DNA of 64,000 bases from Phyllobates terribilis. Taxonomy: Eukaryota. Of the stretch, positions 12,141 to 58,887 are shown piece by piece (positions within the stretch are counted from its first letter, which is position 1; every line of letters begins with the position of its first letter). The stretch lies in NCBI RefSeq assembly GCF_046119375.1, contig NW_027362769.1, forward strand, positions 385,950,001 through 386,014,000, given 5' to 3'. Made by a program: the position numbers and the translations under genes. The notes under the pieces are model-generated. The model saw nothing but the letters and a program-made list of their open reading frames with translations. It made no database searches and was not told the DNA's origin.

Positions 12141-12143
12141 CAC

Positions 12144-14716: not shown

Positions 14717-14823
14717 CTGCAAGAAGAGGTATCACACGTGATGGGATTAGATACACGGCTCAGCAGACATTTTTCCCTCACATCCCACAACCATTAATAA
14801 CACCGTACGCTCCGCTCCCTCAC

Positions 14824-14934: not shown

Positions 14935-15008
14935 CTAAAAGTGAGGAAAATATAAGAACGATCGAGCCGCAGAGGAAACATCACTGACGAGCTCTCACGA
15001 GACGCTAC

Positions 15009-15094
15009 CTTCCGATTCTCAGCGAACAGACTCTCCACATCCTGCCGGACACTGCGCAACTGCTGGAGCAAATCCTCAGGAATACGGTTCTTAC
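15009..15094 (-). CDS. C16orf96: C16orf96-like exon 6 (GKNRIPEDLLQQLRSVRQDVESLFAENRK)
   Basis: Acceptor GATTGCAG|GTAAGA; donor AAG|GTAGCG; 86 nt, phase 1/0, continuing the frame from exon 5; resembles QRICH2 KRTIPPELQEQL. Confidence 0.82.
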
Positions 15095-15105
15095 CTGCAA
15101 TCAGA

Positions 15106-18100
15106 GTATAGGGGGCAGTATTATAGTAGTTATATTCTTGTACATAGGGGGCAGTATTATAGTAGTTATATTCTTGTACATAGGGGGCAGTATTATAGTG
15201 GTTATATTCTTGTACATAGGGAGCAGTATTATAGTAGTTATATTCTTGTACATAGGGAGCAGTATTATAGTAGTTATATTCTTGTACATAGGGAGCAGTA
15301 TTATAGTAGTTATATTCTTGTACATAGGGAGCAGTATTATAGTAGTTATATTCTTGTACATAGGGGGCAGTATTATAGTAGTTATATTCTTGTACATTGG
15401 GGTCAGTATTATAGTAGTTATATTCTTGTACATAGGAGCAGTATTATAGTAGTTATATTCTTGTACATAGGGAGCAGTATTATAGTAGTTATATTCTTGT
15501 ACATAGGGGCAGTATTATAGTAGTTATATTCTTGTACATAGGGGCAGTATTATAGTAGTTATATTCTTGTACATAGGAGCAGTATTATAGTAGTTATATT
15601 CTTGTACATAAGGGGCAGTATTATAGTAGTTATATTCTTGTACATAGGAGCAGTATTATAGTAGTTATATTCTTGTACATAGGGGGCAGTATTAAAGTAG
15701 TTATATTCTTGTACATAGAGGGCAGTATTATAGTAGTTATATTCTTGTATATAGGAGCAGTATTATAGTAGTTATATTCTTGTACATAGGGAGCAGTATT
15801 ATAGTAGTTATATTCTTGTACATAGGGGCAGTATTATAGTAGTTATATTCTTGTACATAGGGAGCAGTATTATAGTAGTTATATTCTTGTACATAGGGGC
15901 AGTATTATAGTAGTTATATTCTTGTACATAGGGGGCAGTATTATAGTAGTTATATTCTTGTACATAGGGAGCAGTATTATAGTAGTTATATTCTTATACA
16001 TAGAGGGCAGTATTATAGTAGTTATATTCTTGTACATAGGGAGCAGTATTATAGTAGTTATATTCTTGTACATAGGGAGCAGTATTATAGTAGTTATATT
16101 CTTGTATATAGGGGGCAGTATTATAGTAGTTATATTCTTGTACATAGGGGCAGTATTATAGTAGTTATATTCTTGTACATAGGAGCAGTATTATAGTAGT
16201 TATATTCTTGTACATAGGGAGCAGTATTATAGTAGTTATATTCTTGTACATAGGGGGCAGTATTATAGTAGCTATATTCTTGTACATAGGAGCAGTATTA
16301 TAGTAGCTATATTCTTGTATATAGGGGCAGTATTATAGTAGTTATATTCTTGTACATAGGGGCAGTATTATAGTAGTTATATTCTTGTACATAGGAGCAG
16401 TATTATAGTAGTTATATTCTTGTACATAGGGAGCAGTATTATAGTAGTTATATTCTTGTACATAGGGAGCAGTATTATAGTAGTTATATTCTTGTATATA
16501 GGGGGCAGTATTATAGTAGTTATATTCTTGTACATAGGGGCAGTATTATAGTAGTTATATTCTTGTACATAGGAGCAGTATTATAGTAGTTATATTCTTG
16601 TACATAGGGAGCAGTATTATAGTAGTTATATTCTTGTACATAGGGGGCAGTATTATAGTAGCTATATTCTTGTACATAGGAGCAGTATTATAGTAGCTAT
16701 CTTCTTGTATATAGGAGCAGTATTATAGTAGTTATATTCTTGTACATAGGGGCAGTATTATAGCAGTTATATTCTTGTATATAGGAGCAGTATTATAGTG
16801 GTTATATTCTTGTACATAGGGAGCAGTATTATAGTAGTTATATTCTTGTACATAGGGAGCAGTATTATAGTAGTTATATTCTTGTACATAGGAGCAGTAT
16901 TATAGTGGTTATATTCTTGTACATAGGGAGCAGTATTATAGTAGTTATATTCTTGTACATAGGAGCAGTATTATAGTAGTTATATTCTTGTACATAGGGG
17001 CAGTATTATAGTAATTATATTCTTGTACATAGGGGGCAGTATTATAGTAGTTATATTCTTGTACATAGGGGCAGTATTATAGTAATATAAATTCTTGTAT
17101 ATAGGAGCAGTATTATAGTAGTTATATTCTTGTACATAGGGGCAGTATTATAGTAGTTATATTCTTGTACATAGGGAGCAGTATTATAGTAGTTAAATTC
17201 TTGTACATAGGGGGCAGTATTATAGTAGTTATATTCCTGTACATAGGAGCAGTATTATAGTAGTTATATTCTTGTATATAGGGGCAGTATTATAGTAGTT
17301 ATATTCTTGTACATAGGGGCAGTATTATAGTAGTTATATTCTTGTACATAGGGGCAGTATTATAGTAGTTATATTCTTGTACATAGGGGGCAGTATTATA
17401 GTAGTTATATTCTTGTACATAAGGGGCAGTATTATAGTAGTTATATTCTTGTACATAGGAGCAGTATTATAGTAGTTATATTCTTGTACATAGGGGGCAG
17501 TATTAAAGTAGTTATATTCTTGTACATAGGGAGCAGTATTATAGTAGTTATATTCTTGCATATAGGGAGCAGTATTATAGTAGTTATATTCTTGTACATA
17601 GGGGCAGTATTATAGTAGTCATATTCTTGTACATAGGAGCAGTATTATAGTAGTTATATTCTTGTACATAAGGGGCAGTATTATAGTAGTTATATTCTTG
17701 TACATAGGAGCAGTATTATAGTAGTTATATTCTTGTACATAGGGGGCAGTATTAAAGTAGTTATATTCTTGTACATAGAGGGCAGTATTATAGTAGTTAT
17801 ATTCTTGTATATAGGAGCAGTATTATAGTAGTTATATTCTTGTACATAGGGAGCAGTATTATAGTAGTTATATTCTTGTACATAGGGGCAGTATTATAGT
17901 AGTTATATTCTTGTACATAAGGAGCAGTATTATAGTAGTTATATTCTTGTACATAGGGGCAGTATTATAGTAGTTATATTCTTGTACATAGGGGGCAGTA
18001 TTATAGTAGTTATATTCTTGTACATAGGGAGCAGTATTATAGTAGTTATATTCTTATACATAGAGGGCAGTATTATAGTAGTTATATTCTTGTACATAGG

Positions 18101-21100
18101 GAGCAGTATTATAGTAGTTATATTCTTGTACATAGGGAGCAGTATTATAGTAGTTATATTCTTGTATATAGGGGGCAGTATTATAGTAGTTATATTCTTG
18201 TACATAGGGGCAGTATTATAGTATTTATATTCTTGTACATAGGAGCAGTATTATAGTAGTTATATTCTTGTACATAGGGAGCAGTATTATAGTAGTTATA
18301 TTCTTGTACATAGGGAGCAGTATTATAGTAGTTATATTCTTGTACATAGGGAGCAGTATTATAGTAGTTATATTCTTGTACATAGGGAGCAGTATTATAG
18401 TAGTTATATTCTTGTACATAGGGGGCAGTATTATAGTAGTTATATTCTTGTACATTGGGGTCAGTATTATAGTAGTTATATTCTTGTACATAGGAGCAGT
18501 ATTATAGTAGTTATATTCTTGTACATAGGGAGCAGTATTATAGTAGTTATATTCTTGTACATAGGGGCAGTATTATAGTAGTTATATTCTTGTACATAGG
18601 GGCAGTATTATAGTAGTTATATTCTTGTACATAGGAGCAGTATTATAGTAGTTATATTCTTGTACATAAGGGGCAGTATTATAGTAGTTATATTCTTGTA
18701 CATAGGAGCAGTATTATAGTAGTTATATTCTTGTACATAGGGGGCAGTATTAAAGTAGTTATATTCTTGTACATAGAGGGCAGTATTATAGTAGTTATAT
18801 TCTTGTATATAGGAGCAGTATTATAGTAGTTATATTCTTGTACATAGGGAGCAGTATTATAGTAGTTATATTCTTGTACATAGGGGCAGTATTATAGTAG
18901 TTATATTCTTGTACATAGGGAGCAGTATTATAGTAGTTATATTCTTGTACATAGGGGCAGTATTATAGTAGTTATATTCTTGTACATAGGGGGCAGTATT
19001 ATAGTAGTTATATTCTTGTACATAGGGAGCAGTATTATAGTAGTTATATTCTTATACATAGAGGGCAGTATTATAGTAGTTATATTCTTGTACATAGGGA
19101 GCAGTATTATAGTAGTTATATTCTTGTACATAGGGAGCAGTATTATAGTAGTTATATTCTTGTATATAGGGGGCAGTATTATAGTAGTTATATTCTTGTA
19201 CATAGGGGCAGTATTATAGTAGTTATATTCTTGTACATAGGAGCAGTATTATAGTAGTTATATTCTTGTACATAGGGAGCAGTATTATAGTAGTTATATT
19301 CTTGTACATAGGGGGCAGTATTATAGTAGCTATATTCTTGTACATAGGAGCAGTATTATAGTAGCTATATTCTTGTATATAGGGGCAGTATTATAGTAGT
19401 TATATTCTTGTACATAGGGGCAGTATTATAGTAGTTATATTCTTGTACATAGGAGCAGTATTATAGTAGTTATATTCTTGTACATAGGGAGCAGTATTAT
19501 AGTAGTTATATTCTTGTACATAGGGAGCAGTATTATAGTAGTTATATTCTTGTATATAGGGGGCAGTATTATAGTAGTTATATTCTTGTACATAGGGGCA
19601 GTATTATAGTAGTTATATTCTTGTACATAGGAGCAGTATTATAGTAGTTATATTCTTGTACATAGGGAGCAGTATTATAGTAGTTATATTCTTGTACATA
19701 GGGGGCAGTATTATAGTAGCTATATTCTTGTACATAGGAGCAGTATTATAGTAGCTATCTTCTTGTATATAGGAGCAGTATTATAGTAGTTATATTCTTG
19801 TACATAGGGGCAGTATTATAGCAGTTATATTCTTGTATATAGGAGCAGTATTATAGTGGTTATATTCTTGTACATAGGGAGCAGTATTATAGTAGTTATA
19901 TTCTTGTACATAGGGAGCAGTATTATAGTAGTTATATTCTTGTACATAGGAGCAGTATTATAGTGGTTATATTCTTGTACATAGGGAGCAGTATTATAGT
20001 AGTTATATTCTTGTACATAGGAGCAGTATTATAGTAGTTATATTCTTGTACATAGGGGCAGTATTATAGTAATTATATTCTTGTACATAGGGGGCAGTAT
20101 TATAGTAGTTATATTCTTGTACATAGGGGCAGTATTATAGTAATATAAATTCTTGTATATAGGAGCAGTATTATAGTAGTTATATTCTTGTACATAGGGG
20201 CAGTATTATAGTAGTTATATTCTTGTACATAGGGAGCAGTATTATAGTAGTTAAATTCTTGTACATAGGGGGCAGTATTATAGTAGTTATATTCCTGTAC
20301 ATAGGAGCAGTATTATAGTAGTTATATTCTTGTATATAGGGGCAGTATTATAGTAGTTATATTCTTGTACATAGGGGCAGTATTATAGTAGTTATATTCT
20401 TGTACATAGGGGCAGTATTATAGTAGTTATATTCTTGTACATAGGGGGCAGTATTATAGTAGTTATATTCTTGTACATAAGGGGCAGTATTATAGTAGTT
20501 ATATTCTTGTACATAGGAGCAGTATTATAGTAGTTATATTCTTGTACATAGGGGGCAGTATTAAAGTAGTTATATTCTTGTACATAGGGAGCAGTATTAT
20601 AGTAGTTATATTCTTGCATATAGGGAGCAGTATTATAGTAGTTATATTCTTGTACATAGGGGCAGTATTATAGTAGTCATATTCTTGTACATAGGAGCAG
20701 TATTATAGTAGTTATATTCTTGTACATAAGGGGCAGTATTATAGTAGTTATATTCTTGTACATAGGAGCAGTATTATAGTAGTTATATTCTTGTACATAG
20801 GGGGCAGTATTAAAGTAGTTATATTCTTGTACATAGAGGGCAGTATTATAGTAGTTATATTCTTGTATATAGGAGCAGTATTATAGTAGTTATATTCTTG
20901 TACATAGGGAGCAGTATTATAGTAGTTATATTCTTGTACATAGGGGCAGTATTATAGTAGTTATATTCTTGTACATAAGGAGCAGTATTATAGTAGTTAT
21001 ATTCTTGTACATAGGGGCAGTATTATAGTAGTTATATTCTTGTACATAGGGGGCAGTATTATAGTAGTTATATTCTTGTACATAGGGAGCAGTATTATAG

Positions 21101-24100
21101 TAGTTATATTCTTATACATAGAGGGCAGTATTATAGTAGTTATATTCTTGTACATAGGGAGCAGTATTATAGTAGTTATATTCTTGTACATAGGGAGCAG
21201 TATTATAGTAGTTATATTCTTGTATATAGGGGGCAGTATTATAGTAGTTATATTCTTGTACATAGGGGCAGTATTATAGTATTTATATTCTTGTACATAG
21301 GAGCAGTATTATAGTAGTTATATTCTTGTACATAGGGAGCAGTATTATAGTAGTTATATTCTTGTACATAGGGAGCAGTATTATAGTAGTTATATTCTTG
21401 TACATAGGGAGCAGTATTATAGTAGTTATATTCTTGTACATAGGGAGCAGTATTATAGTAGTTATATTCTTGTACATAGGGGGCAGTATTATAGTAGTTA
21501 TATTCTTGTACATTGGGGTCAGTATTATAGTAGTTATATTCTTGTACATAGGAGCAGTATTATAGTAGTTATATTCTTGTACATAGGGAGCAGTATTATA
21601 GTAGTTATATTCTTGTACATAGGGGCAGTATTATAGTAGTTATATTCTTGTACATAGGGGCAGTATTATAGTAGTTATATTCTTGTACATAGGAGCAGTA
21701 TTATAGTAGTTATATTCTTGTACATAAGGGGCAGTATTATAGTAGTTATATTCTTGTACATAGGAGCAGTATTATAGTAGTTATATTCTTGTACATAGGG
21801 GGCAGTATTAAAGTAGTTATATTCTTGTACATAGAGGGCAGTATTATAGTAGTTATATTCTTGTATATAGGAGCAGTATTATAGTAGTTATATTCTTGTA
21901 CATAGGGAGCAGTATTATAGTAGTTATATTCTTGTACATAGGGGCAGTATTATAGTAGTTATATTCTTGTACATAGGGAGCAGTATTATAGTAGTTATAT
22001 TCTTGTACATAGGGGCAGTATTATAGTAGTTATATTCTTGTACATAGGGGGCAGTATTATAGTAGTTATATTCTTGTACATAGGGAGCAGTATTATAGTA
22101 GTTATATTCTTATACATAGAGGGCAGTATTATAGTAGTTATATTCTTGTACATAGGGAGCAGTATTATAGTAGTTATATTCTTGTACATAGGGAGCAGTA
22201 TTATAGTAGTTATATTCTTGTATATAGGGGGCAGTATTATAGTAGTTATATTCTTGTACATAGGGGCAGTATTATAGTAGTTATATTCTTGTACATAGGA
22301 GCAGTATTATAGTAGTTATATTCTTGTACATAGGGAGCAGTATTATAGTAGTTATATTCTTGTACATAGGGGGCAGTATTATAGTAGCTATATTCTTGTA
22401 CATAGGAGCAGTATTATAGTAGCTATATTCTTGTATATAGGGGCAGTATTATAGTAGTTATATTCTTGTACATAGGGGCAGTATTATAGTAGTTATATTC
22501 TTGTACATAGGAGCAGTATTATAGTAGTTATATTCTTGTACATAGGGAGCAGTATTATAGTAGTTATATTCTTGTACATAGGGAGCAGTATTATAGTAGT
22601 TATATTCTTGTATATAGGGGGCAGTATTATAGTAGTTATATTCTTGTACATAGGGGCAGTATTATAGTAGTTATATTCTTGTACATAGGAGCAGTATTAT
22701 AGTAGTTATATTCTTGTACATAGGGAGCAGTATTATAGTAGTTATATTCTTGTACATAGGGGGCAGTATTATAGTAGCTATATTCTTGTACATAGGAGCA
22801 GTATTATAGTAGCTATCTTCTTGTATATAGGAGCAGTATTATAGTAGTTATATTCTTGTACATAGGGGCAGTATTATAGCAGTTATATTCTTGTATATAG
22901 GAGCAGTATTATAGTGGTTATATTCTTGTACATAGGGAGCAGTATTATAGTAGTTATATTCTTGTACATAGGGAGCAGTATTATAGTAGTTATATTCTTG
23001 TACATAGGAGCAGTATTATAGTGGTTATATTCTTGTACATAGGGAGCAGTATTATAGTAGTTATATTCTTGTACATAGGAGCAGTATTATAGTAGTTATA
23101 TTCTTGTACATAGGGGCAGTATTATAGTAATTATATTCTTGTACATAGGGGGCAGTATTATAGTAGTTATATTCTTGTACATAGGGGCAGTATTATAGTA
23201 ATATAAATTCTTGTATATAGGAGCAGTATTATAGTAGTTATATTCTTGTACATAGGGGCAGTATTATAGTAGTTATATTCTTGTACATAGGGAGCAGTAT
23301 TATAGTAGTTAAATTCTTGTACATAGGGGGCAGTATTATAGTAGTTATATTCCTGTACATAGGAGCAGTATTATAGTAGTTATATTCTTGTATATAGGGG
23401 CAGTATTATAGTAGTTATATTCTTGTACATAGGGGCAGTATTATAGTAGTTATATTCTTGTACATAGGGGCAGTATTATAGTAGTTATATTCTTGTACAT
23501 AGGGGGCAGTATTATAGTAGTTATATTCTTGTACATAAGGGGCAGTATTATAGTAGTTATATTCTTGTACATAGGAGCAGTATTATAGTAGTTATATTCT
23601 TGTACATAGGGGGCAGTATTAAAGTAGTTATATTCTTGTACATAGGGAGCAGTATTATAGTAGTTATATTCTTGCATATAGGGAGCAGTATTATAGTAGT
23701 TATATTCTTGTACATAGGGGCAGTATTATAGTAGTCATATTCTTGTACATAGGAGCAGTATTATAGTAGTTATATTCTTGTACATAAGGGGCAGTATTAT
23801 AGTAGTTATATTCTTGTACATAGGAGCAGTATTATAGTAGTTATATTCTTGTACATAGGGGGCAGTATTAAAGTAGTTATATTCTTGTACATAGAGGGCA
23901 GTATTATAGTAGTTATATTCTTGTATATAGGAGCAGTATTATAGTAGTTATATTCTTGTACATAGGGAGCAGTATTATAGTAGTTATATTCTTGTACATA
24001 GGGGCAGTATTATAGTAGTTATATTCTTGTACATAGGGAGCAGTATTATAGTAGTTATATTCTTGTACATAGGGGCAGTATTATAGTAGTTATATTCTTG

Positions 24101-27100
24101 TACATAGGGGGCAGTATTATAGTAGTTATATTCTTGTACATAGGGAGCAGTATTATAGTAGTTATATTCTTATACATAGAGGGCAGTATTATAGTAGTTA
24201 TATTCTTGTACATAGGGAGCAGTATTATAGTAGTTATATTCTTGTACATAGGGAGCAGTATTATAGTAGTTATATTCTTGTATATAGGGGGCAGTATTAT
24301 AGTAGTTATATTCTTGTACATAGGGGCAGTATTATAGTATTTATATTCTTGTACATAGGAGCAGTATTATAGTAGTTATATTCTTGTACATAGGGAGCAG
24401 TATTATAGTAGTTATATTCTTGTACATAGGGGGCAGTATTATAGTAGCTATATTCTTGTACATAGGAGCAGTATTATAGTAGCTATATTCTTGTATATAG
24501 GGGCAGTATTATAGTAGTTATATTCTTGTACATAGGGGCAGTATTATAGTAGTTATATTCTTGTACATAGGAGCAGTATTATAGTAGTTATATTCTTGTA
24601 CATAGGGAGCAGTATTATAGTAGTTATATTCTTGTACATAGGGAGCAGTATTATAGTAGTTATATTCTTGTATATAGGGGGCAGTATTATAGTAGTTATA
24701 TTCTTGTACATAGGGGCAGTATTATAGTAGTTATATTCTTGTACATAGGAGCAGTATTATAGTAGTTATATTCTTGTACATAGGGAGCAGTATTATAGTA
24801 GTTATATTCTTGTACATAGGGGGCAGTATTATAGTAGCTATATTCTTGTACATAGGAGCAGTATTATAGTAGCTATCTTCTTGTATATAGGAGCAGTATT
24901 ATAGTAGTTATATTCTTGTACATAGGGGCAGTATTATAGCAGTTATATTCTTGTATATAGGAGCTGTATTATAGTGGTTATATTCTTGTACATAGGGAGC
25001 AGTATTATAGTAGTTATATTCTTGTACATAGGGAGCAGTATTATAGTAGTTATATTCTTGTACATAGGAGCAGTATTATAGTGGTTATATTCTTGTACAT
25101 AGGGAGCAGTATTATAGTAGTTATATTCTTGTACATAGGAGCAGTATTATAGTAGTTATATTCTTGTACATAGGGAGCAGTATTATAGTAGTTAAATTCT
25201 TGTACATAGGGGGCAGTATTATAGTAGTTATATTCCTGTACATAGGAGCAGTATTATAGTAGTTATATTCTTGTATATAGGGGCAGTATTATAGTAGTTA
25301 TATTCTTGTACATAGGGGCAGTATTATAGTAGTTATATTCTTGTACATAGGGGCAGTATTATAGTAGTTATATTCTTGTACATAGGGGGCAGTATTATAG
25401 TAGTTATATTCTTGTACATAAGGGGCAGTATTATAGTAGTTATATTCTTGTACATAGGAGCAGTATTATAGTAGTTATATTCTTGTACATAGGGGGCAGT
25501 ATTAAAGTAGTTATATTCTTGTACATAGGGAGCAGTATTATAGTAGTTATATTCTTGCATATAGGGAGCAGTATTATAGTAGTTATATTCTTGTACATAG
25601 GGGCAGTATTATAGTAGTCATATTCTTGTACATAGGAGCAGTATTATAGTAGTTATATTCTTGTACATAAGGGGCAGTATTATAGTAGTTATATTCTTGT
25701 ACATAGGAGCAGTATTATAGTAGTTATATTCTTGTACATAGGGGGCAGTATTAAAGTAGTTATATTCTTGTACATAGAGGGCAGTATTATAGTAGTTATA
25801 TTCTTGTATATAGGAGCAGTATTATAGTAGTTATATTCTTGTACATAGGGAGCAGTATTATAGTAGTTATATTCTTGTACATAGGGGCAGTATTATAGTA
25901 GTTATATTCTTGTACATAGGGAGCAGTATTATAGTAGTTATATTCTTGTACATAGGGGCAGTATTATAGTAGTTATATTCTTGTACATAGGGGGCAGTAT
26001 TATAGTAGTTATATTCTTGTACATAGGGAGCAGTATTATAGTAGTTATATTCTTATACATAGAGGGCAGTATTATAGTAGTTATATTCTTGTACAAAGGG
26101 AGCAGTATTATAGTAGTTATATTCTTGTACATAGGGAGCAGTATTATAGTAGTTATATTCTTGTATATAGGGGGCAGTATTATAGTAGTTATATTCTTGT
26201 ACATAGGGGCAGTATTATAGTATTTATATTCTTGTACATAGGAGCAGTATTATAGTAGTTATATTCTTGTACATAGGGAGCAGTATTATAGTAGTTATAT
26301 TCTTGTACATAGGGGGCAGTATTATAGTAGCTATATTCTTGTACATAGGAGCAGTATTATAGTAGCTATATTCTTGTATATAGGGGCAGTATTATAGTAG
26401 TTATATTCTTGTACATAGGGGTAGTATTATAGTAGTTATATTCTTGTATATAGGAGCAGTATTATAGTGGTTATATTCTTGTACATAGGGAGCAGTATTA
26501 TAGTAGTTATATTCTTGTACATAGGGAGCAGTATTATAGTAGTTATATTCTTGTACATAGGAGCAGTATTATAGTGGTTATATTCTTGTACATAGGGAGC
26601 AGTATTATAGTAGTTATATTCTTGTACATAGGGAGCAGTATTATAGTAGTTATATTCTTGTACATAGGAGCAGTATTATAGTGGTTATATTCTTGTACAT
26701 AGGGAGCAGTATTATAGTAGTTATATTCTTGTACATAGGAGCAGTATTATAGTAGTTATATTCTTGTACATAGGGAGCAGTATTATAGTAGTTAAATTCT
26801 TGTACATAGGGGGCAGTATTATAGTAGTTATATTCCTGTACATAGGAGCAGTATTATAGTAGTTATATTCTTGTATATAGGGGCAGTATTATAGTAGTTA
26901 TATTCTTGTACATAGGGGCAGTATTATAGTAGTTATATTCTTGTACATAGGGGCAGTATTATAGTAGTTATATTCTTGTACATAGGGGGCAGTATTATAG
27001 TAGTTATATTCTTGTACATAAGGGGCAGTATTATAGTAGTTATATTCTTGTACATAGGAGCAGTATTATAGTAGTTATATTCTTGTACATAGGGGGCAGT

Positions 27101-45100: not shown

Positions 45101-48100
45101 ATAGTAGTTATATTCTTGTACATAGGGGCAGTATTATAGTAGTTATATTCTTGTACATAGGCAGCAGTATTATAGTAGTTATATTCTTGTACATAGGGGC
45201 AGTATTATAGTAGTTATATTCTTGTACATAGGGGGCAGTATTATAGTAGTTATATTCTTGTACATAGGGAGCAGTATTATAGTAGTTATATTCTTATACA
45301 TAGAGGGCAGTATTATAGTAGTTATATTCTTGTACATAGGGAGCAGTATTATAGTAGTTATATTCTTGTACATAGGGAGCAGTATTATAGTAGTTATATT
45401 CTTGTATATAGGGGGCAGTATTATAGTAGTTATATTCTTGTACATAGGGGCAGTATTATAGTAGTTATATTCTTGTACATAGGAGCAGTATTATAGTAGT
45501 TATATTCTTGTACATAGGGAGCAGTATTATAGTAGTTATATTCTTGTACATAGGGGGCAGTATTATAGTAGCTATATTCTTGTACATAGGAGCAGTATTA
45601 TAGTAGCTATATTCTTGTATATAGGGGCAGTATTATAGTAGTTATATTCTTGTACATAGGGGCAGTATTATAGTAGTTATATTCTTGTATATAGGAGCAG
45701 TATTATAGTGGTTATATTCTTGTACATAGGGAGCAGTATTATAGTAGTTATATTCTTGTACATAGGGAGCAGTATTATAGTAGTTATATTCTTGTACATA
45801 GGAGCAGTATTATAGTGGTTATATTCTTGTACATAGGGGCAGTATTATAGTAGTTATATTCTTGTACATAGGGGGCAGTATTAAAGTAGTTATATTCTTG
45901 TACATAGGGAGCAGTATTATAGTAGTTATATTCTTGCATATAGGGAGCAGTATTATAGTAGTTATATTCTTGTACATAGGGGCAGTATTATAGTAGTTAT
46001 ATTCTTGTACATAGGAGCAGTATTATAGTAGTTATATTCTTGTACATAAGGGGCAGTATTATAGTAGTTATATTCTTGTACATAGGAGCAGCATTATAGT
46101 AGTTATATTCTTGTACATAGGGGGCAGTATTAAAGTAGTTATATTCTTGTACATAGGGAGCAGTATTATAGTAGTTATATTCTTGCGTATAGGGAGCAGT
46201 ATTATAGTAGTTATATTCTTGTACATAGGGGCAGTATTATAGTAGTTATATTCTTGTACATAGGGGCAGTATTATAGTAGTTATATTCTTATACATAGGG
46301 GGCAGTATTATAGTAGTTATATTCTTGTACATAGGAGCAGTATTATAGTAGTTATATTCTTGTACATAGGGGCAGTATTATAGTAGTTATATTCTTGTAC
46401 ATAGGAGCAGTATTATAGTAGCTATATTCTTGTACATACGGGCAGTATTATAGTAGTTATATTCTTGTACATAGGAGCAGTATTATAGTAGTTATATTCT
46501 TGCACATAGGGGGCAGTATTATAGTAGTTATATTCTTGTACATAGGGGCAGTATTATAGTAGTTATATTCTTGTACATAGGGGCAGTATTATAGTAGTTA
46601 TATTCTAGTACATACGGGCAGTATTATAGTAGTTATATTCTTGTACATAGGAGCAGTATTATAGTAGTTATATTCTTGTACATAGGAGCAGTATTATAGT
46701 AGTTATATTCTTGTACATACGGGCAGTATTATAGTAGTTATATTCTTGTACATAGCAGCAGTATTATAGTAGTTATAGTCTAGTACATACGGGCAGTATT
46801 ATAGTAGTTATATTCTTGTACATAGGGGGCAGTATTATAGTAGTTATATTCTTGTACATAGGGGCAGTATTATAGTAGTTATATTCTTGTACATACGGGC
46901 AGTATTATAGTAGTTATATACTAGTACATACGGGCAGTATTATAGTAATTATATTCTTGTACATACGGGCAGTATTATAGTAGTTATATTCTTGCACATA
47001 GGGGGCAGTATTATAGTAGTTATATTCTTGTACATAGGGGCAGTATTATAGTAGTTATATTCTTGCATGTAGGAGCAGTATTATAGTAGTTATATTCTTG
47101 TACATAAGAGCAGTATTATAGTAGTTATATTCTTGTACATAGGGGCAGTATTATAGTAGTTATATTCTTGTACATAGGGGCAGTATTATAGTAGTTATAT
47201 TCTAGTACATACGGGCAGTATTATAGTAGTTATATTCTTGTATATAAGAGCGGTATTACAGTAGTTATATTCTATACATAGGGGGCAGTATTATAGTAGT
47301 TATATTCTTGAACATAGGAGCAGAATTACAGTAGTTATATTCTTGTATATAGGAGCAGTATTATAGTAGTTATATTCTTGTATATAGGAGCGGTATTACA
47401 GTAATTATATTCTTGTACATAGGGGCAGTATTATAGTAGTTATATTCTTGTACATAGGGGCAGTATTATAGTAGTTATATTCTTGTACATAGGGGCAGTA
47501 TTATAGTAGTTATATTCTTGTACATAAGAGCAGTATTATAGTAGTTATATTCTTGTACATACGGGCAGTATTATAGTAGTTATATTCTTGTACATAGGGG
47601 CAGTATTATAGTAGTTATATTCTTGTACATAGGGGGCAGTATTATAGTAGTTATATTCTTGTATATAGGGGCGGTATTACAGTAGTTATATTCTTGTACA
47701 TAGGAGCAGTATTTAGTAGTTATATTCTTGTACATAGGAGCAGTATTATAGTAGTTATTTTCTTGTATATAGGAGCAGTATTATAGTAGTTATATTCTTG
47801 TATATAGGAGCGGTATTACAGTAGTTATATTCTTGTACATAGGGGCAGTATTATAGTAGTTATATTCTTGTACATAGGTGCAGTATTATAGTAGTTATAT
47901 TCTTGTATATAGGAGCAGTATTATAGTAGTTATATTCTTGTATATAGGAGCAGTATTATAGTAGTTATATTCTTGTATATAGGAGCGGTATTACAGTAGA
48001 TATATTCTTGTACATAGGGGCAGTATTATAGTAGTTATATTCTTGTACATAGGGGCAGTATTATAGTAGTTATATTCTTGTACATAGGGGGCAGTATTAT

Positions 48101-51100
48101 AGTAGTTATATTCTTGTATATAGGAGCAGTATTATAGTAGTTATATTCTTGTACATAGGAGCAGTATTATAGTAGTTATATTCTTGTATATAGGAGCGGT
48201 ATTACAGTAGTTATATTCTTGTACATAGGAGCAGTATTACAGTAGTTATATTCTTGTATATAGGAGCAGTATTACAGTAGTTATATTCTTGTACATAGGG
48301 GCAGTATTATAGTAGTTATACTCTTGTACATAGGGGCAGTATTATAGTAGTTATACTCTTGTACATAGGAGCAGTATTATAGTAGTTATATTCTTGTACA
48401 TAGGGACAGTATTATAGTAGTTATATTCTTGTACATAGGGGCAATATTATAGTAGTTATATTCTTGTACATAGGGGCAGAATTATAGTAGTTATACTCTT
48501 GTACATAGGAGCAGTATTATAGTAGTTATATTCTTGTACATAGGGGCAGTATTCTATTAGTTATATTCTTGTACATAGGGACTGTATTATAGTAGTTATA
48601 TTCTTGTACATAGGGGCAGTATTATAGTAGTCATAATCTTATATATAGGGGGCAGTATTATAGTAGTTATATGCTTGGACATGGGGCAGTATTATAGAAG
48701 TTATATTCTTGTACATAGGAGCAGTATTATAGTAGTTATATTCTTATACATAGGGTGCAGTATTATAGTAATTATATTCTTGTACATAGGGGCAGTATTA
48801 TAGTAGTTATATTCTTGTACATAGGGGCAGTATTATAGAAGTTATATTCTTGTACATAGGAGCAGTATTATAGTAGTTATATTCTTGTATATAGGGGGCA
48901 GTATTATAGTAGTTATATTCTTGTACATAGGGAGTAGTATTATAGTAGTTATATTCTTGTACATAGGGGCAGTATTATAGTAGCTATATTCTTGTACATA
49001 GGGAGCAGTATTATAGTAGATATATTCTTGTACATAGGGGGCAGTATTATAGTAGTTATATTCTTGTACATAGGGGCAGTATTATAATAGTTATATTCTT
49101 GTACACAGGAACAGTATTATAATAGTTATATTCTTGTACATAGGGGGCAGTATTATAGAAGTTATATTCTTGTACATAGAGGGCAGTATTATAGTAGTTA
49201 TATTCTTGTACATAGGGGCAGTATTATAGTAGTTATATTCTTGTACATAGGGGGCTGTATTATAGTAGTTATATTCTTGTACATAGGAGCAGTATTATAG
49301 TAGTTATATTCTTGTACATAGGGGCAGTATTATAGTAGTTATATTCTTGTACATAGGGGGCAGTATTATAGTAGTTATATTCTTTTACATAGGGGCAGTA
49401 TTATAGTAGTTATATTCTTGTACATAGGGGGCTGTATTATAGTAGTTATATTCTTGTACATAGGAGCAGTATTATAGTAGTTATATTCTTGTACATAGGG
49501 GCAGTATTATAGTAGTTATATTCTTGTACATAGGAGCAGTATTATAGTAGTTATATTCTTGTACATAGGAGCAGTATTATAGTAGTTATATTCTTGTACA
49601 TAGGGGCAGTATTATAGTAGTTATATTCTTGTACATAGGGAGCTGTATTATAGTAGTTATATTCTTGTACATAGGAGCAGTATTATAGTAGTTATATTCT
49701 TGTACATAGGGAGCAGTATTATAGTAGTTATATTCTTGTACATAGGGGACAGTATTATAGTAGTCATATTCTTATACATAGGGGGCAGTATTATAGTAGT
49801 TATATTCTTGTACATAGGGGTAGTATTATAGTAGATATATTCTTGTACATAGGGGGCAGTATTATAGTAGTTATATTCTTGTACATAGGGGCAGTATTAT
49901 AGTTGTTATATTCTTTTACATAGGGGCAGTATTATAGTAGTTATATTCTTGTACATAGGGAGCAGTATTATAGTAGTTATATTCTTGTACATAGGGGGCA
50001 GTATTATAGTAGTTATATTCTTGTACATAGGGGGCAGTATTATAGTACTTATATTCTTGTACATAGGGGGCAGTATTATAGTAGTTATAGTCTTGTTCAT
50101 AGGGGCAGTATTATAGTAGTTATATTGTACATAGGGGCAGCATTATAGTAGTTATATTCTTGTACATAGGGGCAGTATTATAGTAGTTATATTCTTGTAC
50201 ATAGGGGCAGTATTATAGTAGTTATATTCTTGTACATAGGAGCAGTATTATAGTAGTTATATTCTTGTACATACGGGCAGTATTATAGTAGTTATATTCT
50301 TGTACATAGGGGCAGTATTATAGTAGTTATATTCTTGTACATAGGGGGCAGTATTATAGTAGTTATATTCTTGTATATAGGAGCGGTATTACAGTAGTTA
50401 TATTCTTGTACATAGGAGCAGTATTTAGTAGTTATATTCTTGTACATAGGAGCAGTATTATAGTAGTTATTTTCTTGTATATAGGAGCAGTATTATAGTA
50501 GTTATATTCTTGTATATAGGAGCAGTATTACAGTAGTTATATTCTTGTACATAGGGGCAGTATTATAGTAGTTATATTCTTGTACATAGGGGCAGTATTA
50601 TAGTAGTTATATTCTTGTATATAGGAGCAGTATTATAGTAGTTATATTCTTGTATATAGGAGCAGTATTATAGTAGTTATATTCTTGTATATAGGAGCGG
50701 TATTACAGTAGATATATTCTTGTACATAGGGGCAGTATTTTAGTAGTTATATTCTTGTACATAGGTGCAGTATTATAGTAGTTATATTCTTGTACATAGG
50801 GGGCAGTATTATAGTAGTTATATTCTTGTATATAGGAGCAGTATTATAGTAGTTATATTCTTGTACATAGGAGCAGTATTATAGTAGTTATATTCTTGTA
50901 CATAGGAGCGGTATTACAGTAGTTATATTCTTGTACATAGGAGCAGTATTACAGTAGTTATATTCTTGTATATAGGAGCAGTATTACAGTAGTTATATTC
51001 TTGTACATAGGAGCAGTATTATAGCAGTTATATTCTTGTATATAGGAGCGGTATTACAGTAGTTATATTCTTGTACATAGGGGCAGTATTATAGTAGTTA

Positions 51101-54100
51101 TATTCTTGTACATAGGGGCAGTATTATAGTAGTTATATTCTTGTACATACGGGGCAGTATTATAGTAGTTATATTCTTATACATAGGGGGCAGTATTATA
51201 GTAGTTATATTCCTGTACATAGGAGCAGTATTATAGTAGTTATATTCTTGTACATAAGAGCAGTGTTATAGCAGTTATATTCTTGTACATAGAGGCAGTA
51301 TTATAGAAGTTATATTCTTGTACCTAGGAGCAGTATTATAGTAGTTATATTCTTGTACATACGGGGCAGTATTATAGTAGTTATATTCTTATACATACGG
51401 GGCAGTATTATAGTAGTTATATTCTTATACATAGGGGGCAGTATTATAGTAGTTATATTCTTGTACATAGGAGCAGTATTATAGTAGTTATATTCTTGTA
51501 CATAGGGGCAGTATTATAGTAGCTATATTCTTGTACATAGGAGCAGTATTATAGTAGTTATATTCTTGTACATAGGGGGCAGTATTATAGTAGTTATTTT
51601 CTTGTACATAGGGGGCAGTATTATAGTAGTTATATTCTTGTACATAGGGGGCAGTATTATAGTAGTTATATTCTTGTACATAGGAGCAGTATTATAGTAG
51701 TTATATTCTTGTACGTAGGAGCAGTATTATAGTAGTTATATTCTTATACATAGGGAGTAGTATTATAGTAGTTATATTCTTTTACATAGGAGCAGTATTA
51801 TAGTAGTTATATTCTTGTACATAGGAGCAGTATTATAGTAGTTATATTCCTGTACATAGGAGCATTATTATAGTAGTTATATTCTTATACATAGGGAGTA
51901 GTATTATAGTAGTTATATTCTTGTACATAGGAGCAGTATTATAGTAGTTATATTCTTGTACATAGGGGCAGTATTATAATAGTTATATTCTTATACATAG
52001 GGGGCAGTATTATAGTAGTTATATTCCTGTACATACGAGCAGTATTATAGTAGTTATATTCTTGTACATAGGGGCAGTATTATAGTAGTTATATTCCTGT
52101 ACATAGGGGGCAGTATTATAGTAGTTATATTCTTGTACATAGAGGCAGAATTATAGAAGTTAAATTCTTGTACATAGGAGCAGTATTATAGTAGTTATAT
52201 TCTTGTACATACGGGGCAGTATTATAGTAGTTATATTTTTGTCCATAGGGGGCAGTATTATAGTAGTTATATTCTTGTACATAGGAGCAGTATTATAGTA
52301 GTTATATTCTTGTACATAGGGGCAGTATTATAGTAGTTACATTCTTTTACACAGGGGGCAGTATTATAGTAGTTATATTCTTGTACATAGGAGCAGTATT
52401 ATAGTAGTTATATTCTTGTACATAGAGGCAGTATTATAGTAGGTATATTCTTGTACATAGGGGGCAGTATTATAGTAGTTATATTCTTGTACATAGGGGG
52501 CAGTATTATAGTAGTTATATTCTTGTACATTGGGGCAGTATTATAGTAGTTATATTCTTGTACATAGGGGGCAGTATTCTATTAGTTATATTCTTGTACA
52601 TAGGGACAGTATTATAGTAGTTATATTCTTGTACATAGGGGCAGTATTCTATTAGTTATATTCTTGTACATAGGGGCAGTATTATAGTAGTCATATTCTT
52701 ATACATAGGGGGCAGTATTATAGTAGTTATATTCTTGTACATAGGGGCAGTATTATAGTAGTTATATTCTTGCACATAGGGAGCAGTATTATAGTAGATA
52801 TATTCTTGTACATAGGGGGCAGTATTATAGTAGTTATATTCTTGTACATAGGGGCAGTATTATAATAGTTATATTCTTGTACACAGGAGCAGTATTATAG
52901 TAGTTATATTCTTGTACATAGGGGCAGTATTATAGTACTTATAATCTTATACATAGGGGGCATTATTATAGTAGTTATATTCTTATACATAGGGGGCAGT
53001 ATTATAGTAGTCATATTCTTGTTCAAAGGAGCAGTATTATAGTGGTTATATTCTTGTACATAGAGGCAGTATTATAGTAGTTATATTCTTGTACATGTGA
53101 GCAGTATTATAGTAGCCATATTCTTGTACATAGTGGCAGTATTATAGTAGTTATATTCTTGTACATAGGGGCAGTATTATAGTAGTTATATTCTTGTACA
53201 TAAGGGCAGTATTATAGTAGTTATATTCTTGTACATAGGGACAGTATTATAGTAGTTATATTCTTGTACATAGGGGCAATATTATAGTAGTTATATTCTT
53301 GTACATAGGGGCAGTATTATAGTAGTTATACTCTTGTACATAGGAGCAGTATTATAGTAGTTATATTCTTGTACATAGGGGCAGTATTCTATTAGTTATA
53401 TTCTTGTACATAGGGACTGTATTATAGTAGTTATATTCTTGTACATAGGGGCAGTATTATAGTAGTCATAATCTTATATATAGGGGGCAGTATTATAGTA
53501 GTTATATTCTTGGACATGGGGCAGTATTATAGAAGTTATATTCTTGTACATAGGAGCAGTATTATAGTAGTTATATTCTTATACATAGGGTGCAGTATTA
53601 TAGTAATTATATTCTTGTACATAGGGGCAGTATTATAGTAGTTATATTCTTGTACATAGGGGCAGTATTATAGAAGTTATATTCTTGTACATAGGAGCAG
53701 TATTATAGTAGTTATATTCTTGTATATAGGGGGCAGTATTATAGTAGTTATATTCTTGTACATAAGGAGTAGTATTATAGTAGTTATATTCTTGTACATA
53801 GGGGCAGTATTATAGTAGCTATATTCTTGTACATAGGGAGCAGTATTATAGTAGATATATTCTTGTACATAGGGGGCAGTATTATAGTAGTTATATTCTT
53901 GTACATAGGGGCAGTATTATAATAGTTATATTCTTGTACACAGGAACAGTATTATAATAGTTATATTCTTGTACATAGGGGGCAGTATTATAGAAGTTAT
54001 ATTCTTGTACATAGGGGGCAGTATTATAGTAGTTATATTCTTGTACATAGGGGCAGTATTATAGTTGTTATATTCTTTTACATAGGGGCAGTATTATAGT

Positions 54101-57100
54101 AGTTATATTCTTGTACATAGGGGGCTGTATTATAGTAGTTATATTCTTGTACATAGGAGCAGTATTATAGTAGTTATATTCTTGTACATAGGGGCAGTAT
54201 TATAGTAGTTATATTCTTGTACATAGGAGCAGTATTATAGTAGTTATATTCTTGTACATAGGAGCAGTATTATAGTAGTTATATTCTTGTACATAGGGGC
54301 AGTATTATAGTAGTTATATTCTTGTACATAGGGAGCTGTATTATAGTAGTTATATTCTTGTACATAGGAGCAGTATTATAGTAGTTATATTCTTGTACAT
54401 AGGGAGCAGTATTATAGTAGTTATATTCTTGTACATAGGGGGCAGTATTATAGTAGTCATATTCTTATACATAGGGGGCAGTATTATAGTAGTTATATTC
54501 TTGTACATAGGGGTAGTATTATAGTAGATATATTCTTGTACATAGGGGGCAGTATTATAGTAGTTATATTCTTGTACATAGGGGCAGTATTATAGTTGTT
54601 ATATTCTTTTACATAGGGGCAGTATTATAGTAGTTATATTCTTGTACATAGGGAGCAGTATTATAGTAGTTATATTCTTGTACATATGGGGCAGTATTAT
54701 AGTAGTTATATTCTTGTACATAGGGGGCAGTATTATAATACTTATATTCTTGTACATAGGGGGCAGTATTATAGTAGTTATAGTCTTGTTCATAGGGGCA
54801 GTATTATAGTAGTTATATTGTACATAGGGGCAGCATTATAGTAGTTATATTCTTGTACATAGGGGCAGTATTATAGTAGTTGTATTCTTGTACATAGGGA
54901 GCAGTATTATAGTAGCTATATTCTTGTACATAGGGAGCAGTATTATAGTAGATATATTCTTGTACATAGGGGGCAGTATTATAGTAGTTATATTCTTGTA
55001 CATAGGGGCAGTATTATAATAGTTATATTCTTGTACACAGGAGCAGTATTATGATAGTTATATTCTTGTACATAGGGGGCAGTATTATAGAAGTTATATT
55101 CTTGTACATAGTGGGCAGTATTATAGTAGTTATATTCTTGTACATAGGGGCAGTATTATAGTTGTTATATTCTTTTACATAGGGGCAGTATTATAGTAGT
55201 TATATTCTTGTACATAGGGGGCTGTATTATAGTAGTTATATTCTTGTACATAGGAACAGTATTATAGTTATATTCTTGTACATAGGAGCAGTATTATAGT
55301 AGTTATATTCTTGTCCATAGGGGCAGTATTATAGTAGTTATATTCTTGTACATAGGGAGCTGTATTATAGTAGTTATATTCTTGTACATAGGAGCAGTGT
55401 TATAGTAGTTATATTCTTGTACATAGGGAGCAGTATTATAGTAGTTATATTCTTGTACATAGGGGGCAGTATTATAGTAGTCATATTCTTATACATAGGG
55501 GGCAGTATTATAGTAGCTATATTCTTGTACATAGGGGTAGTATTATAGTAGATATATTCTTGTACATAGGGGGCAGTATTATAGTAGTTATATTCTTGTA
55601 CATAGGGGCAGTATTATAGTTGTTATATTCTTTTACATAGGGGCAGTATTATAGTAGTTATATTCTTGTACATAGGGAGCAGTATTATAGTAGTTATATT
55701 CTTGTACATAGGGGGCAGTATTATAGTAGTTATATTCTTGTACATAGGGGGCAGTATTATACTACTTATATTCTTGTACATAGGGGGCAGTATTATAGTA
55801 GTTATATTCTTGTTCATAGGGGCAGTATTATAGTAGTTATATTGTACATAGGGGCAGCATTATAGTAGTTATATTCTTGTACATAGGGGCAGTATTATAG
55901 TAGTTATACTCTTGTACATAGGAGCAGTATTATAGTAGTTATATTCTTGTACATAGGGACAGTATTATAGTAGTTATATTCTTGTACATAGGGGCAGTAT
56001 TATAGTAGTTATACTCTTGTACATAGGAGCAGTATTATAGTAGTTATATTCTTGTACATAGGGGCAATATTATAGTAGTTATATTCTTGTACATAGGGGC
56101 AGTATTATAGTAGTTATACTCTTGTACATAGGAGCAGTATTATAGTAGTTATATTCTTGTACATAGGGGCAATATTATAGTAGTTATATTCTTGTACATA
56201 GGGGCAGTATTATAGTAGTTATACTCTTGTACATAGGGACAGTATTATAGTAGTTATATTCTTGTACATAGGGGCAGTATTATAGTAGTTATATTCTTGT
56301 ACATAGGGGCAGTATTATTGTGGTTATATTCTTGTACATAGGGGACAGTATTTTAGTAGTTATATTCTTGTACATAGGGGCAGTATTATAGTAGTCATAT
56401 TCTTATACATAGGGGGCAGTATTATTGTAGTTATATTCTTGTACATAGGGGCAGTATTATAGTAGTTATATTCTTGTACATAGGGAGCAGTATTATAGTA
56501 GATATATTCTTGTACATAGGGGGCAGTATTATAGTAGTTATATTCTTGTACATAGGGGGCAGTATTATAGTAGTTATATTCTTTTACATAGGGGCAGTAT
56601 TATAGTAGTTATATTCTTGTAGATAGGGAGCAGTATTATAGTAGTTATATTCTTGTACATAGGGGCCGTATTATAGTAGTCATATTCTTATACATAGGGG
56701 GCAGTATTATAGTAGTTATATTCTTGTACATAGGGGTAGTATTATAGTAGATATATTCTTGTACATAGGGGGCAGTATTATAGTAGTTATATTCTTGTAC
56801 ATAGGGGCAGTATTATAGTTGTTATATTCTTTTACATAGGGGCAGTATTATAGTAGTTATATTCTTGTACATAGGAGCAGTATTATAGTAGTTATATTCT
56901 TGTACATAGGGAGCAGTATTATAGTAGTTATATTCTTGTATATAGGGGGCAGTATTATAGTAGTTATATTCTTGTACATAGGAGGCAGTATTATAGTAGT
57001 TATATTCTTGTACATAGGAGCAGTATTATAGTAGTTATATTCTTGTACATAGGAGCAGTATTATAGTAGTTATATTCTTGTACATAGGGGGCAGTATTAT

Positions 57101-58665
57101 AGTAGTTATATTCTTGTACATAGGGGCAGTATTATAGTAGTTATATTCTTGTACATAGGAGCAGTATTATAGTAGTTATATTCTTGTACATAGGGGGCAG
57201 TATTATAGTAGTTATATTCTTGTACATAGGAGCAGTATTATAGTAGTTATATTCTTGTACATAGGGGGCAGTATTATAGTAGTTATATTCTTGTACATAG
57301 GGGCAGTATTATAGTAGTTATATTCTTGTACATAGGGAGCAGTATTATAGTAATTATATTCTTGTACATAGGGGCAGTATTATAGTAGTTATACTCTTGT
57401 ACATAGGAGCAGTATTATAGTAGTTATATTCTTGTACATAGGGGTAGTATTATAGTAGATATATTCTTGTACATAGGGAGCAGTATTATAGTAGTTATAT
57501 TCTTGTACATAGGGGCAGTATTATAGTTGTTATATTCTTTTACATAGGGGCAGTATTATAGTAGTTATATTCTTGTACATAGGAGCAGTATTATAGTAGT
57601 TATATTCTTGTACATAGGGAGCAGTATTATAGTAGTTATATTCTTGTATATAGGGGGCAGTATTATAGTAGTTATATTCTTGTACATAGGAGGCAGTATT
57701 ATAGTAGTTATATTCTTGTACATAGGAGCAGTATTATAGTAGTTATATTCTTGTACATAGGAGCAGTATTATAGTAGTTATATTCTTGTACATAGGGGGC
57801 AGTATTATAGTAGTTATATTCTTGTACATAGGGGCAGTATTATAGTAGTTATATTCTTGTACATAGGAGCAGTATTATAGTAGTTATATTCTTGTACATA
57901 GGGGGCAGTATTATAGTAGTTATATTCTTGTACATAGGAGCAGTATTATAGTAGTTATATTCTTGTACATAGGGGGCAGTATTATAGTAGTTATATTCTT
58001 GTACATAGGGGCAGTATTATAGTAGTTATATTCTTGTACATAGGGGGCAGTATTATAGTAGTTATATTCTTGTACATAGGGGGCAGTATTATAGTAGTTA
58101 TATTCCTGTACATAGGGGGCAGTATTATAGTAGATATATTCTTGTACATAGGGGGCAGTATTATAGTAGTTATATTCTTGTACATAGAGGGCAGTATTAT
58201 AGTAGATATATTCTTGTACATAGGGGGCAGTATTATAGTAGTTATATTCCTGTACATAGGGGGCAGTATTATAGTAGATATATTCTTGTACATAGGGGGC
58301 AGTATTATAGTAGTTATATTCTTGTACATAGGGGGCAGTATTATAGTAGTTATATTCTTGTACATAGGGGCAGTATTATAGTAGTTATATTCTTGTACAT
58401 AGGGGGCAGTATTATAGTAGTTATATTCTTGTACATAGGGGGCAGTATTATAGTAGTTATATTCCTGTACATAGGGGGCAGTATTATAGTAGATATATTC
58501 TTGTACATAGGGGGCAGTATTATAGTAGTTATATTCTTGTACATAGAGGGCAGTATTATAGTAGATATATTCTTGTACATAGGGAGCAGTATTATAGTAG
58601 TTATATTCTTGTACATAGGGGCAGTATTATAGTAGTTATACTCTTGTACATAGGGGGCAGTATTA
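15106..58665. repeat. Giant 35-36 bp minisatellite/satellite array (~43.6 kb, ~1,230 copies) filling intron 5 of the C16orf96-like gene
   Basis: Unit GG(G/A)GCAGTATTATAGTAGTTATATTCTTGTACATA(G); no unique insert seen on reading through; diagnostic variants recur at fixed kb periods. Confidence 0.99.
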
Positions 58666-58736
58666 GAACAGCCACACTCTTGTCCTGTGGCTATATTTTG
58701 GAGTTATGTAATGTAACCTGCCCAGTTGTCTCTCAC

Positions 58737-58887
58737 CCATCTCTATGTCGAGCCTCTTCAGCTCTTGTTCTATATCCAGGACCCGTCTCTCCAGACCCTC
58801 GTGTTTTCCGGGCAATGCCCCCAGACTGTTTAGGATCTTTTTTACATTGCGCTGTTTGGTCTCATTGCTTAGTGTCCAGTCTTCGCT
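58737..58887 (-). CDS. C16orf96: C16orf96-like exon 5 (SEDWTLSNETKQRNVKKILNSLGALPGKHEGLERRVLDIEQELKRLDIEM+G)
   Basis: Acceptor TATCATCACCAG|; donor ATGG|GTGAGA (phase 1); aligns with recalled [26 protein letters not shown]...ANMG. Confidence 0.8.

Follow-up and report, generated by a model that had tools for sequence, protein, structure and literature searches.

In Drosophila, the introns of kl-3 and kl-5 extend over megabases, take ~90 h to transcribe, and require Blanks and Heph as well as co-transcriptional splicing (PMC6508621, PMC11207136). In humans, intron 3 of CACNA1C carries a variable number tandem repeat (VNTR) with a 30-bp unit, a median length of 5.7 kb that can rise to 61 kb, 158 unit types, and large internal duplications (PMC11118589). 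In hyloid frogs, the satellite family PcP190 offers a precedent for a long-lived tandem repeat (PMC11675491). Here we describe intron 5 of the C16orf96 homolog of Phyllobates terribilis, which lies in a 64-kb window (the whole stretch of DNA analysed, positions 385,950,001–386,014,000 of contig NW_027362769.1, assembly GCF_046119375.1) and consists almost entirely of one 35-bp minisatellite. We hold it probable, at roughly 0.7, that this is an ordinary, efficiently spliced intron whose body is an old minisatellite that has been passively expanded.

The resemblance to the fly genes is limited. Like kl-3 and kl-5, the frog gene is sperm-related, its intron is a near-pure tandem repeat that would have to be transcribed and spliced, and intron sequence dominates the gene span, with intron 5 alone taking up 83% of the coding sequence (CDS) span. 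The fly introns, however, are built of a 5–7-bp satellite on the heterochromatic Y and take days to transcribe, whereas the frog intron measures 43.6 kb, has a 35-bp unit, and has short orthologs (PMC6508621, PMC11207136). The original prediction for this locus spoke of intron gigantism and of an analogue of kl-3 and kl-5, which was overstated, given that the fly introns are megabases of simple satellite served by dedicated RNA-binding proteins. At 43,642 bp, intron 5 does not reach the hundreds of kilobases to megabases (>1000 times a typical intron) that characterize that class, even though its body is almost wholly tandem satellite; it shares with kl-3 and kl-5 only the sperm-type gene and the tandem-repeat intron.

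The locus agrees better with an intronic VNTR. The array is a head-to-tail run of a 10–100-bp unit lying wholly within an intron, its unit variants are arranged in duplicated blocks, and its expansion is lineage-specific (43.6 kb vs. 0.6–1.4 kb). A handful of frequent units, a long list of rare ones, and extensive internal duplication form the pattern known from long-read assemblies of CACNA1C. We class the locus as an unusually pure intronic-VNTR expansion. The human array is a small island in a much larger intron, far from splice sites, and is human-specific, whereas the frog array fills 99.8% of its intron, sits at the 3′ splice region, and has a unit that occurs in four frog families. Common to both are an intronic unit of ~30 bp, ~160 unit types, block duplications, and a lineage-specific expansion (PMC11118589).

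Structure of Intron 5

Intron 5, as placed by its splice sites and by an exact spliced gene model, runs on the minus strand from 58736 to 15095, is of GT-AG type, and is in phase 1. The donor reads ...GAGATGG/GTGAGA on the minus strand, with the first intron G at 58736, and the acceptor reads ...TTGCAG/GTAAGAACCGT, with the final intron base at 15095. Tandem Repeats Finder (TRF) reports a single array at 15112–58665 (period 35, also 71; 1230 copies; 93% matches), which amounts to 43,554 of the 43,642 bp. Non-repeat sequence is confined to 71 nt at the donor end (58666–58736), which aligns weakly to the same region in other hyloids, and to 17 nt by TRF, or ~11 by eye, at the acceptor end. When the array was cut at a conserved 8-mer, it resolved into 1,230 units of 32–36 bp, of which 704 have 35 bp and 513 have 36 bp, the difference between these two lengths sitting in a C-tract (CCCC, CTCC, CCCCC, or CTCCC). 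The units fall into 161 distinct types, and segmentation of the whole array found no foreign insert. The G+C content is flat at 30–31%, with a GC skew of ~+0.45 on the plus strand; the sense strand is 39% A, 30% U, 22% C, and 8.6% G. No N letters occur in the window.

Intron 6 measures 74 bp and the remaining introns 67–1,976 bp. Intron 5 is therefore ~20–600 times as long as the other introns of its gene, yet it stays inside the normal vertebrate size range; the genome of P. terribilis has been estimated at 12.6 Gb (PMC12208295), and 43.6 kb is large for a compact gene but not for a vertebrate. The original prediction was accurate on the structure of the intron: its intron coordinates, the intron length, the repeat share, and the short unique ends (given as ~70 and ~10 bp) are all correct, and the phase-1 join of exons 5 and 6, the 74-bp intron 6, and the 16 open exons are upheld by the exact spliced model.

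Host Gene and Evidence for Splicing

Two P. terribilis RefSeq proteins, XP_073504694.1 (660 aa) and XP_073504693.1 (661 aa), are encoded in the window at 100% identity through 16 GT-AG coding exons (exact spliced alignment), and the closest ortholog (Phyllobates terribilis) matches the window exons with 92–100% identity by tblastn. The CDS spans 52,379 bp, exactly the gene range that GCA_046119375.1 gives for the protein, so the window is the RefSeq locus, and intron 5 is already implicit in the RefSeq gene model. The host gene is a C16orf96 homolog of the DUF4795 family. A search with exon 1 returned full-length relatives named “uncharacterized protein C16orf96 homolog,” and a second homolog search found orthologs in ~30 anurans, all homologs carrying PF16043. 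Pfam DUF4795 was matched by exon 9 (E = 1.1e-09) and exon 10 (E = 2.3e-06) at contiguous profile positions 71–166. Exons 1–8, searched singly and including exons 5 and 6, gave no Pfam match, and continuity of the protein across intron 5 is therefore drawn from orthologous proteins and from RNA. C16orf96 is a paralog of QRICH2 through DUF4795 (PMC11006759), and its human form reportedly shows enrichment in spermatids, both early and late (PMC9933954). The link to QRICH2 that had been proposed thus needs correction, the gene being the DUF4795 paralog and not QRICH2 itself, while the proposed testis link of human C16orf96 agrees with the spermatid enrichment of the human ortholog.

Precise removal of the intron was observed in RNA. 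Logan contigs of four runs (X1, X3, X15, and X16) from two studies were mapped onto 58640–61300, where they join exons 1-2, 2-3, 3-4, and 4-5, with CT..AC on the plus strand corresponding to GT..AG on the gene strand. The exon-5 piece reaches 58731 with one mismatch, and the 30 unaligned letters that follow match letters 7–36 of exon 6 in reverse complement; the mismatch arises because the six bridging letters, the GTAAGA of exon 6, are aligned onto the GTGAGA of the intron. The exact exon 5/exon 6 junction is present in X1, X15, and X16. In X3, a 2,215-nt contig extends 1,204 letters past exon 5, which leaves room for exons 6–16 (1,163–1,166 nt) and a short 3′ untranslated region (UTR). In the four runs, no contig lay on the unique 71-nt intron start and no competing loose end was found at the intron 5 donor. 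RNA word depth was ~10–47 in two runs and ~380–400 in the other two. The gene is one transcription unit, and intron 5 is removed precisely. The exon 5–6 junction, named in the original prediction as a check to make, is thus present in contigs of three runs, and the view of a single intact, expressed gene whose halves are not separately transcribed is borne out by contigs that run through exons 1-2-3-4-5 straight into exon 6. Words of the repeat are also present in RNA runs, though not assignable to the C16orf96 locus.

Splicing Signals and Tolerance of the Array

The transcribed strand of the array is poor in consensus splicing and poly(A) signals. In its 43.5 kb, the sense strand contains no GTAAG, GTGAG, or GTRAGT and no AATAAA or ATTAAA. 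Selection against the creation of poly(A) signals was considered as an explanation and rejected: only ~6 units carry the needed change, so the count of zero for AATAAA is not significant. Among the 1,324 AG dinucleotides of the array, 1,199 are of the weak AAG form, and no pyrimidine run of at least 10 occurs in it. For a 284-nt sense piece, the folding energy is −17.2 kcal/mol, weaker than that of any of 200 shuffles (z = +2.7); for its antisense, the value is −59.5 kcal/mol. The motif UACUAUAAU is found in 1,077 copies, with a short C-rich tract and AAG following in each unit, so that each unit appears to be a feeble 3′ splice-site mimic with no donor behind it.

The true acceptor is built differently. 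Here the AAG of the last unit is replaced by TCTGATTGCAG, leaving a 42-nt AG-free stretch with UACUAUAAU at ~−26 to −34, and the same layout of the last unit is seen before the acceptor in three other hyloids. The last full unit and the degenerate partial unit after it (15095–15140, minus strand) may thus serve the true acceptor as branch site and pyrimidine tract. Rfam gave no match over 8000–16000. A recursive splice site at this position was also considered, as AG/GTAAGA at 15095/15094 resembles the AG/GTAAGT type of recursive sites. The candidate was rejected: such sites are removed after use as an intermediate, whereas this motif is the start of a constitutive coding exon retained in the mRNA. 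It encodes Gly-Lys and is older than the expansion. GTAAGA is conserved as the start of exon 6 in hyloids, including those with introns of 0.6–1.4 kb, and is GTAAAA in Mixophyes; because it is conserved beside short introns, it is not an adaptation to intron size.

Origin and Expansion of the Array in Frogs

Exact gene models were built for five further frogs, all of which have 16 coding exons and a phase-1 intron at the same position. Intron 5 measures 933 bp in Spea bombifrons, 1,985 bp in Mixophyes fleayi, 1,444 bp in Leptodactylus fuscus, 1,324 bp in Dendropsophus ebraccatus, and 592 bp in Eleutherodactylus coqui, the last including a 132-N gap. This gap falls inside the orthologous array (11948–12079 of the E. 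coqui locus sequence), and 592 bp is therefore the assembled size only. The comparison across anurans that had been called for thus sets 592–1,985 bp in five frogs against 43,642 bp in P. terribilis. Whole-gene spans are 20.4 kb in D. tinctorius, 21.6 kb in Anomaloglossus, and 19.2 kb in R. imitator, and, judged by these spans, intron 5 of these dendrobatoids is well below 43 kb.

The 35/36-bp unit is present on the sense strand of intron 5 in L. fuscus, D. ebraccatus, and E. coqui, in arrays of 0.3–1.4 kb or 6–40 units (1,405 of 1,444 bp in L. fuscus), and no copy was found outside intron 5 in the 13–33 kb available per hyloid locus (~90 kb of orthologous loci). In these three hyloids and in P. 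terribilis, the array ends ~10–25 nt from the acceptor, and in three of the four species (P. terribilis, D. ebraccatus, and L. fuscus) the last partial unit halts at the same unit phase. The Dendropsophus array is split in two by an unrelated G+C-rich insert of 425 bp (11950–12374 of its locus sequence). In Mixophyes, intron 5 is free of tandem repeats and nowhere resembles the 35-bp unit. Spea intron 5 lacks the unit as well and has a different, unrelated minisatellite of 33 bp (5714–6015 of its locus sequence); Spea also carries a 1.1-kb array of a 75-bp unit in intron 2 (3182–4272 of its locus sequence), and tandem repeats seem to arise repeatedly in introns of the C16orf96 homolog. Birth of the 35-bp repeat by duplication of the ancestral acceptor region was considered and set aside, as no convincing similarity to the acceptor regions of Mixophyes or Spea was found. 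On comparison of these loci, the simplest reading is that the array arose once, later than the separation from the Mixophyes lineage but earlier than the divergence of the four hyloid families sampled. The 35-bp repeat is thus ancient, and only the ~30-fold expansion is specific to the P. terribilis line. Because related frogs manage with 6–40 units, a large array is not required for the function of the gene.

The P. terribilis array grew by duplication of blocks. The order of unit variants shows recurring long motifs, and the array contains exact internal repeats: one of 5.8 kb at an offset of 3,058 bp, one of 2.1 kb at 13,300 bp, and one of 1.7 kb at 1,600 bp. In the 8.8 kb that adjoin the acceptor (15201–24035, minus strand), a 3,058-bp, 86-unit period is repeated 2.9 times as a higher-order block with zero mismatches. 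Such perfection reflects a triplication of very recent date or else a loop made by the assembler, and this is the one stretch of the array whose length is doubtful.

These observations give the following course. When the hyloid families diverged, the 35-bp array already stood in intron 5, in sense orientation and next to the 3′ splice region. In the P. terribilis lineage it grew from tens of units to ~1,230, with blocks probably arising by unequal exchange or replication slippage. Such growth may have been tolerated as the transcribed strand is G-poor, unstructured, and nearly inert for splicing. The array offers no consensus 5′ site, no canonical poly(A) signal, and weak 3′ mimics (a short pyrimidine run plus AAG), and since these mimics are only weak, exon definition would ignore the array units. 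At general rates of RNA polymerase II, 43.6 kb adds tens of minutes of transcription, and the added length would carry this cost, some tens of minutes, without a dedicated function.

Conservation and Dispersal of the Repeat Unit

The unit has changed less than the exons around it. Random units taken from different families are 91–93% identical, close to the 93.5% identity within an array, and the unit consensus differs at ≤1 of 35 positions between families; the P. terribilis array contains 125 copies of the unit that is most frequent in L. fuscus. Between families, CDS nucleotides are 82% identical, fourfold-degenerate sites 60–64%, and introns 6–8 38–64%, while amino-acid identity to other hyloids is 76–80% (vs. 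60–64% at fourfold sites).

The unit is not confined to this gene. The 35/36-bp repeat is also translated into the tails of two other gene models, a uPAR-like gene of D. tinctorius (MYKNITTIILPP) and a WD-repeat gene of Engystomops (E. pustulosus; YVQEYNYYNTAP), where the repeat has either been exonised or been mis-annotated as a terminal exon. Unit 31-mers are present in RNA and DNA runs of at least 12 organisms. The 35-bp unit had no match in Joint Genome Institute (JGI) metagenome contigs, and a text search of a paper library for the unit sequence gave no relevant match. Since the unit stands at other loci and in the runs of many organisms, its conservation is not specific to intron 5. It probably reflects a dispersed hyloid repeat family, maintained by drive, inter-locus conversion, or a mobile carrier, and a splicing role of the unit at the locus level is possible. 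PcP190 is likewise a transcribed tandem repeat recognisable across distant families of Hyloidea; it differs in being a 190-bp, heterochromatic repeat derived from 5S ribosomal DNA, whereas the present unit of 35 bp is euchromatic, intronic, and at an orthologous gene position (PMC11675491).

Competing Explanations

Several observations weigh against passive expansion. Conservation of the unit is far above neutrality, and a passive array bound to its locus should have drifted at about a third of positions; some constraint, drive, or inter-locus conversion must therefore act on the unit, which could be functional, and the array has stayed beside the 3′ splice site in four families. In addition, the array length is an assembly length, 8.8 kb of it being suspiciously perfect, and the RNA evidence for expression is blind to source tissue. 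In one alternative, the 35-mer would act at C16orf96 as a cis-element under selection, a module of branch site and C/U-tract or a protein platform that promotes the exon 6 acceptor, of which the P. terribilis array would be a hyper-expanded version, its unit kept unchanged beside the 3′ splice site since early hyloids. Such a role would fit a unit more conserved than the coding exons, the unit phase that P. terribilis, D. ebraccatus, and L. fuscus share where the array meets the acceptor, and the presence of UACUAUAAU both throughout the array and upstream of the true AG. We nevertheless think it unlikely: the orthologous intron is spliced in Mixophyes and Spea although it lacks the unit there, the unit also stands at unrelated loci and in the runs of many organisms, and the placement of the branch point is a prediction. 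In a wider form, in which the 35-mer would be a module under selection or molecular drive across Hyloidea, dispersed to other genes and always placed so that the transcript bears its unstructured strand with the C-tract and the branch-site-like motif, the proposal is equally unlikely. If it were true, the 35-mer would have been a 3′ splice-region element of intron 5 since before the hyloid divergence, and in P. terribilis an element for splicing or for RNA-binding proteins would have been naturally over-expressed in 1,230 copies.

The large array could itself be functional in P. terribilis, as the original prediction suggested: as a transcription delay, an RNA-binding-protein sponge, or a length-polymorphic dial. 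A single pre-mRNA with 1,230 near-identical, unstructured units bearing a C-tract and UGUA would suit such a function, expression is high in two runs, and sequence variants of the human CACNA1C VNTR have been associated with expression (PMC11118589). However, related frogs manage with 6–40 units, the genes of other dendrobatoids span 19–22 kb in total, and the delay would come to tens of minutes, making this very unlikely in our estimate. An array length that is largely an assembly artefact, through over-extension or looping within the repeat, is only slightly more credible. The mismatch-free copies at 15201–24035 would be expected of such an error, and the E. coqui assembly breaks inside the same array, which indicates that the array is hard to assemble; yet ~80% of the array is a non-periodic, information-rich order of 161 unit types, as in real long-read sequence, the window is free of Ns, a real human VNTR shows similar block duplication, and an error of a few kilobases would leave the overall picture intact. 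Finally, the arrays of the four hyloid families could be independent insertions of a mobile 35-mer carrier and hence not orthologous, which would match the dispersal of the 35-mer family and account for the young-looking units. All four, however, share the intron, the strand, and an end-point within ~10–25 nt of the acceptor, no transposon ends were seen, and the ~90 kb of orthologous loci hold no further copy; we regard independent insertion as highly improbable. Passive expansion of an old minisatellite within an ordinary, efficiently spliced intron remains the explanation that we favor.

Other Features of the Locus

The features of the gene outside intron 5 all lie on the minus strand. A non-coding 5′ exon has its 3′ end at 61969–61998 and is spliced to 61236, as judged from the unique mapping of an RNA loose end seen in all four runs; ~163 nt of it are present in one RNA contig, and it probably reaches ~62131. 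Exon 1 (60819–61236) contains 5′ UTR from 61236 and the start codon at 61214–61212, and RNA pieces cover 60818–61236. The exact model then places coding exon 2 at 60424–60528 (RNA joint 60527/60818), exon 3 at 60146–60226 (RNA joint 60226/60424), and exon 4 at 59723–59809 (RNA joint 59808/60145). Exon 5 (58737–58887; 151 nt), which ends in phase 1, shows an RNA joint at 58887/59723, and its contigs continue into exon 6 (15009–15094; 86 nt), which starts with GTAAGA (Gly-Lys) and whose letters 7–36 are those seen on the exon-5 contigs. Exons 7–16 occupy 8836–14934 in the exact spliced model, with DUF4795 in exons 9–10: exons 7–10 at 14934–14824, 14716–14642, 14474–14310, and 12639–12521; exons 11–13 at 12206–12144, 11726–11670, and 11453–11303; and exons 14–16 at 9326–9233, 9162 or 9165–9073, and 8987–8836. 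The two starts of exon 15 distinguish the two RefSeq isoforms, which differ by a 3-nt tandem acceptor of the NAGNAG type (9165 vs. 9162).

Other repeats are present in the window. A GC-rich 19-bp minisatellite of ~61 copies (12963–14186) forms 73% of intron 9 (1,670 bp), and all three of its minus-strand frames are open for >400 codons. A 12-bp repeat of ~30 copies (11767–12122) forms 85% of intron 11 (417 bp). With the 35-, 19-, and 12-bp arrays, three introns of one gene are thus mostly tandem repeat. Intron 13 holds a frameshifted remnant of a Tc1/mariner (Sleeping Beauty-like) transposase (9751–10797, minus strand), with Pfam HTH_SB, HTH_Tnp_Tc3_2, and DDE_3 in three frames. Within intron 4, ~33 bp at 59431–59465 attract numerous RNA contigs of high depth, unrelated to one another, in each of the four runs and are probably a fragment of an abundant transcribed repeat. 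At ~5.5 kb beyond the stop codon, an 86-bp satellite (1–3371; 39.6 copies, 94% match) continues past the window start. Kinship of the 35-mer with this satellite is not claimed, as only two 8-mers shared by the two were found by eye.

Implications

A vertebrate counterpart of the Drosophila giant-gene programme is not established by this finding. What the locus does provide is a clean natural test of splicing, with ~1,230 tandem weak 3′ splice-site mimics placed between two exons that are still spliced exactly at high expression, and with orthologs of 6–40 units as built-in controls. It also presents a 35-bp intronic unit that has changed less than the surrounding coding sequence across frog families. 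The locus points to the sequence traits that would let a repeat grow harmlessly within a gene, namely a G-poor and unstructured sense strand, no strong donors, and no canonical poly(A) signals.

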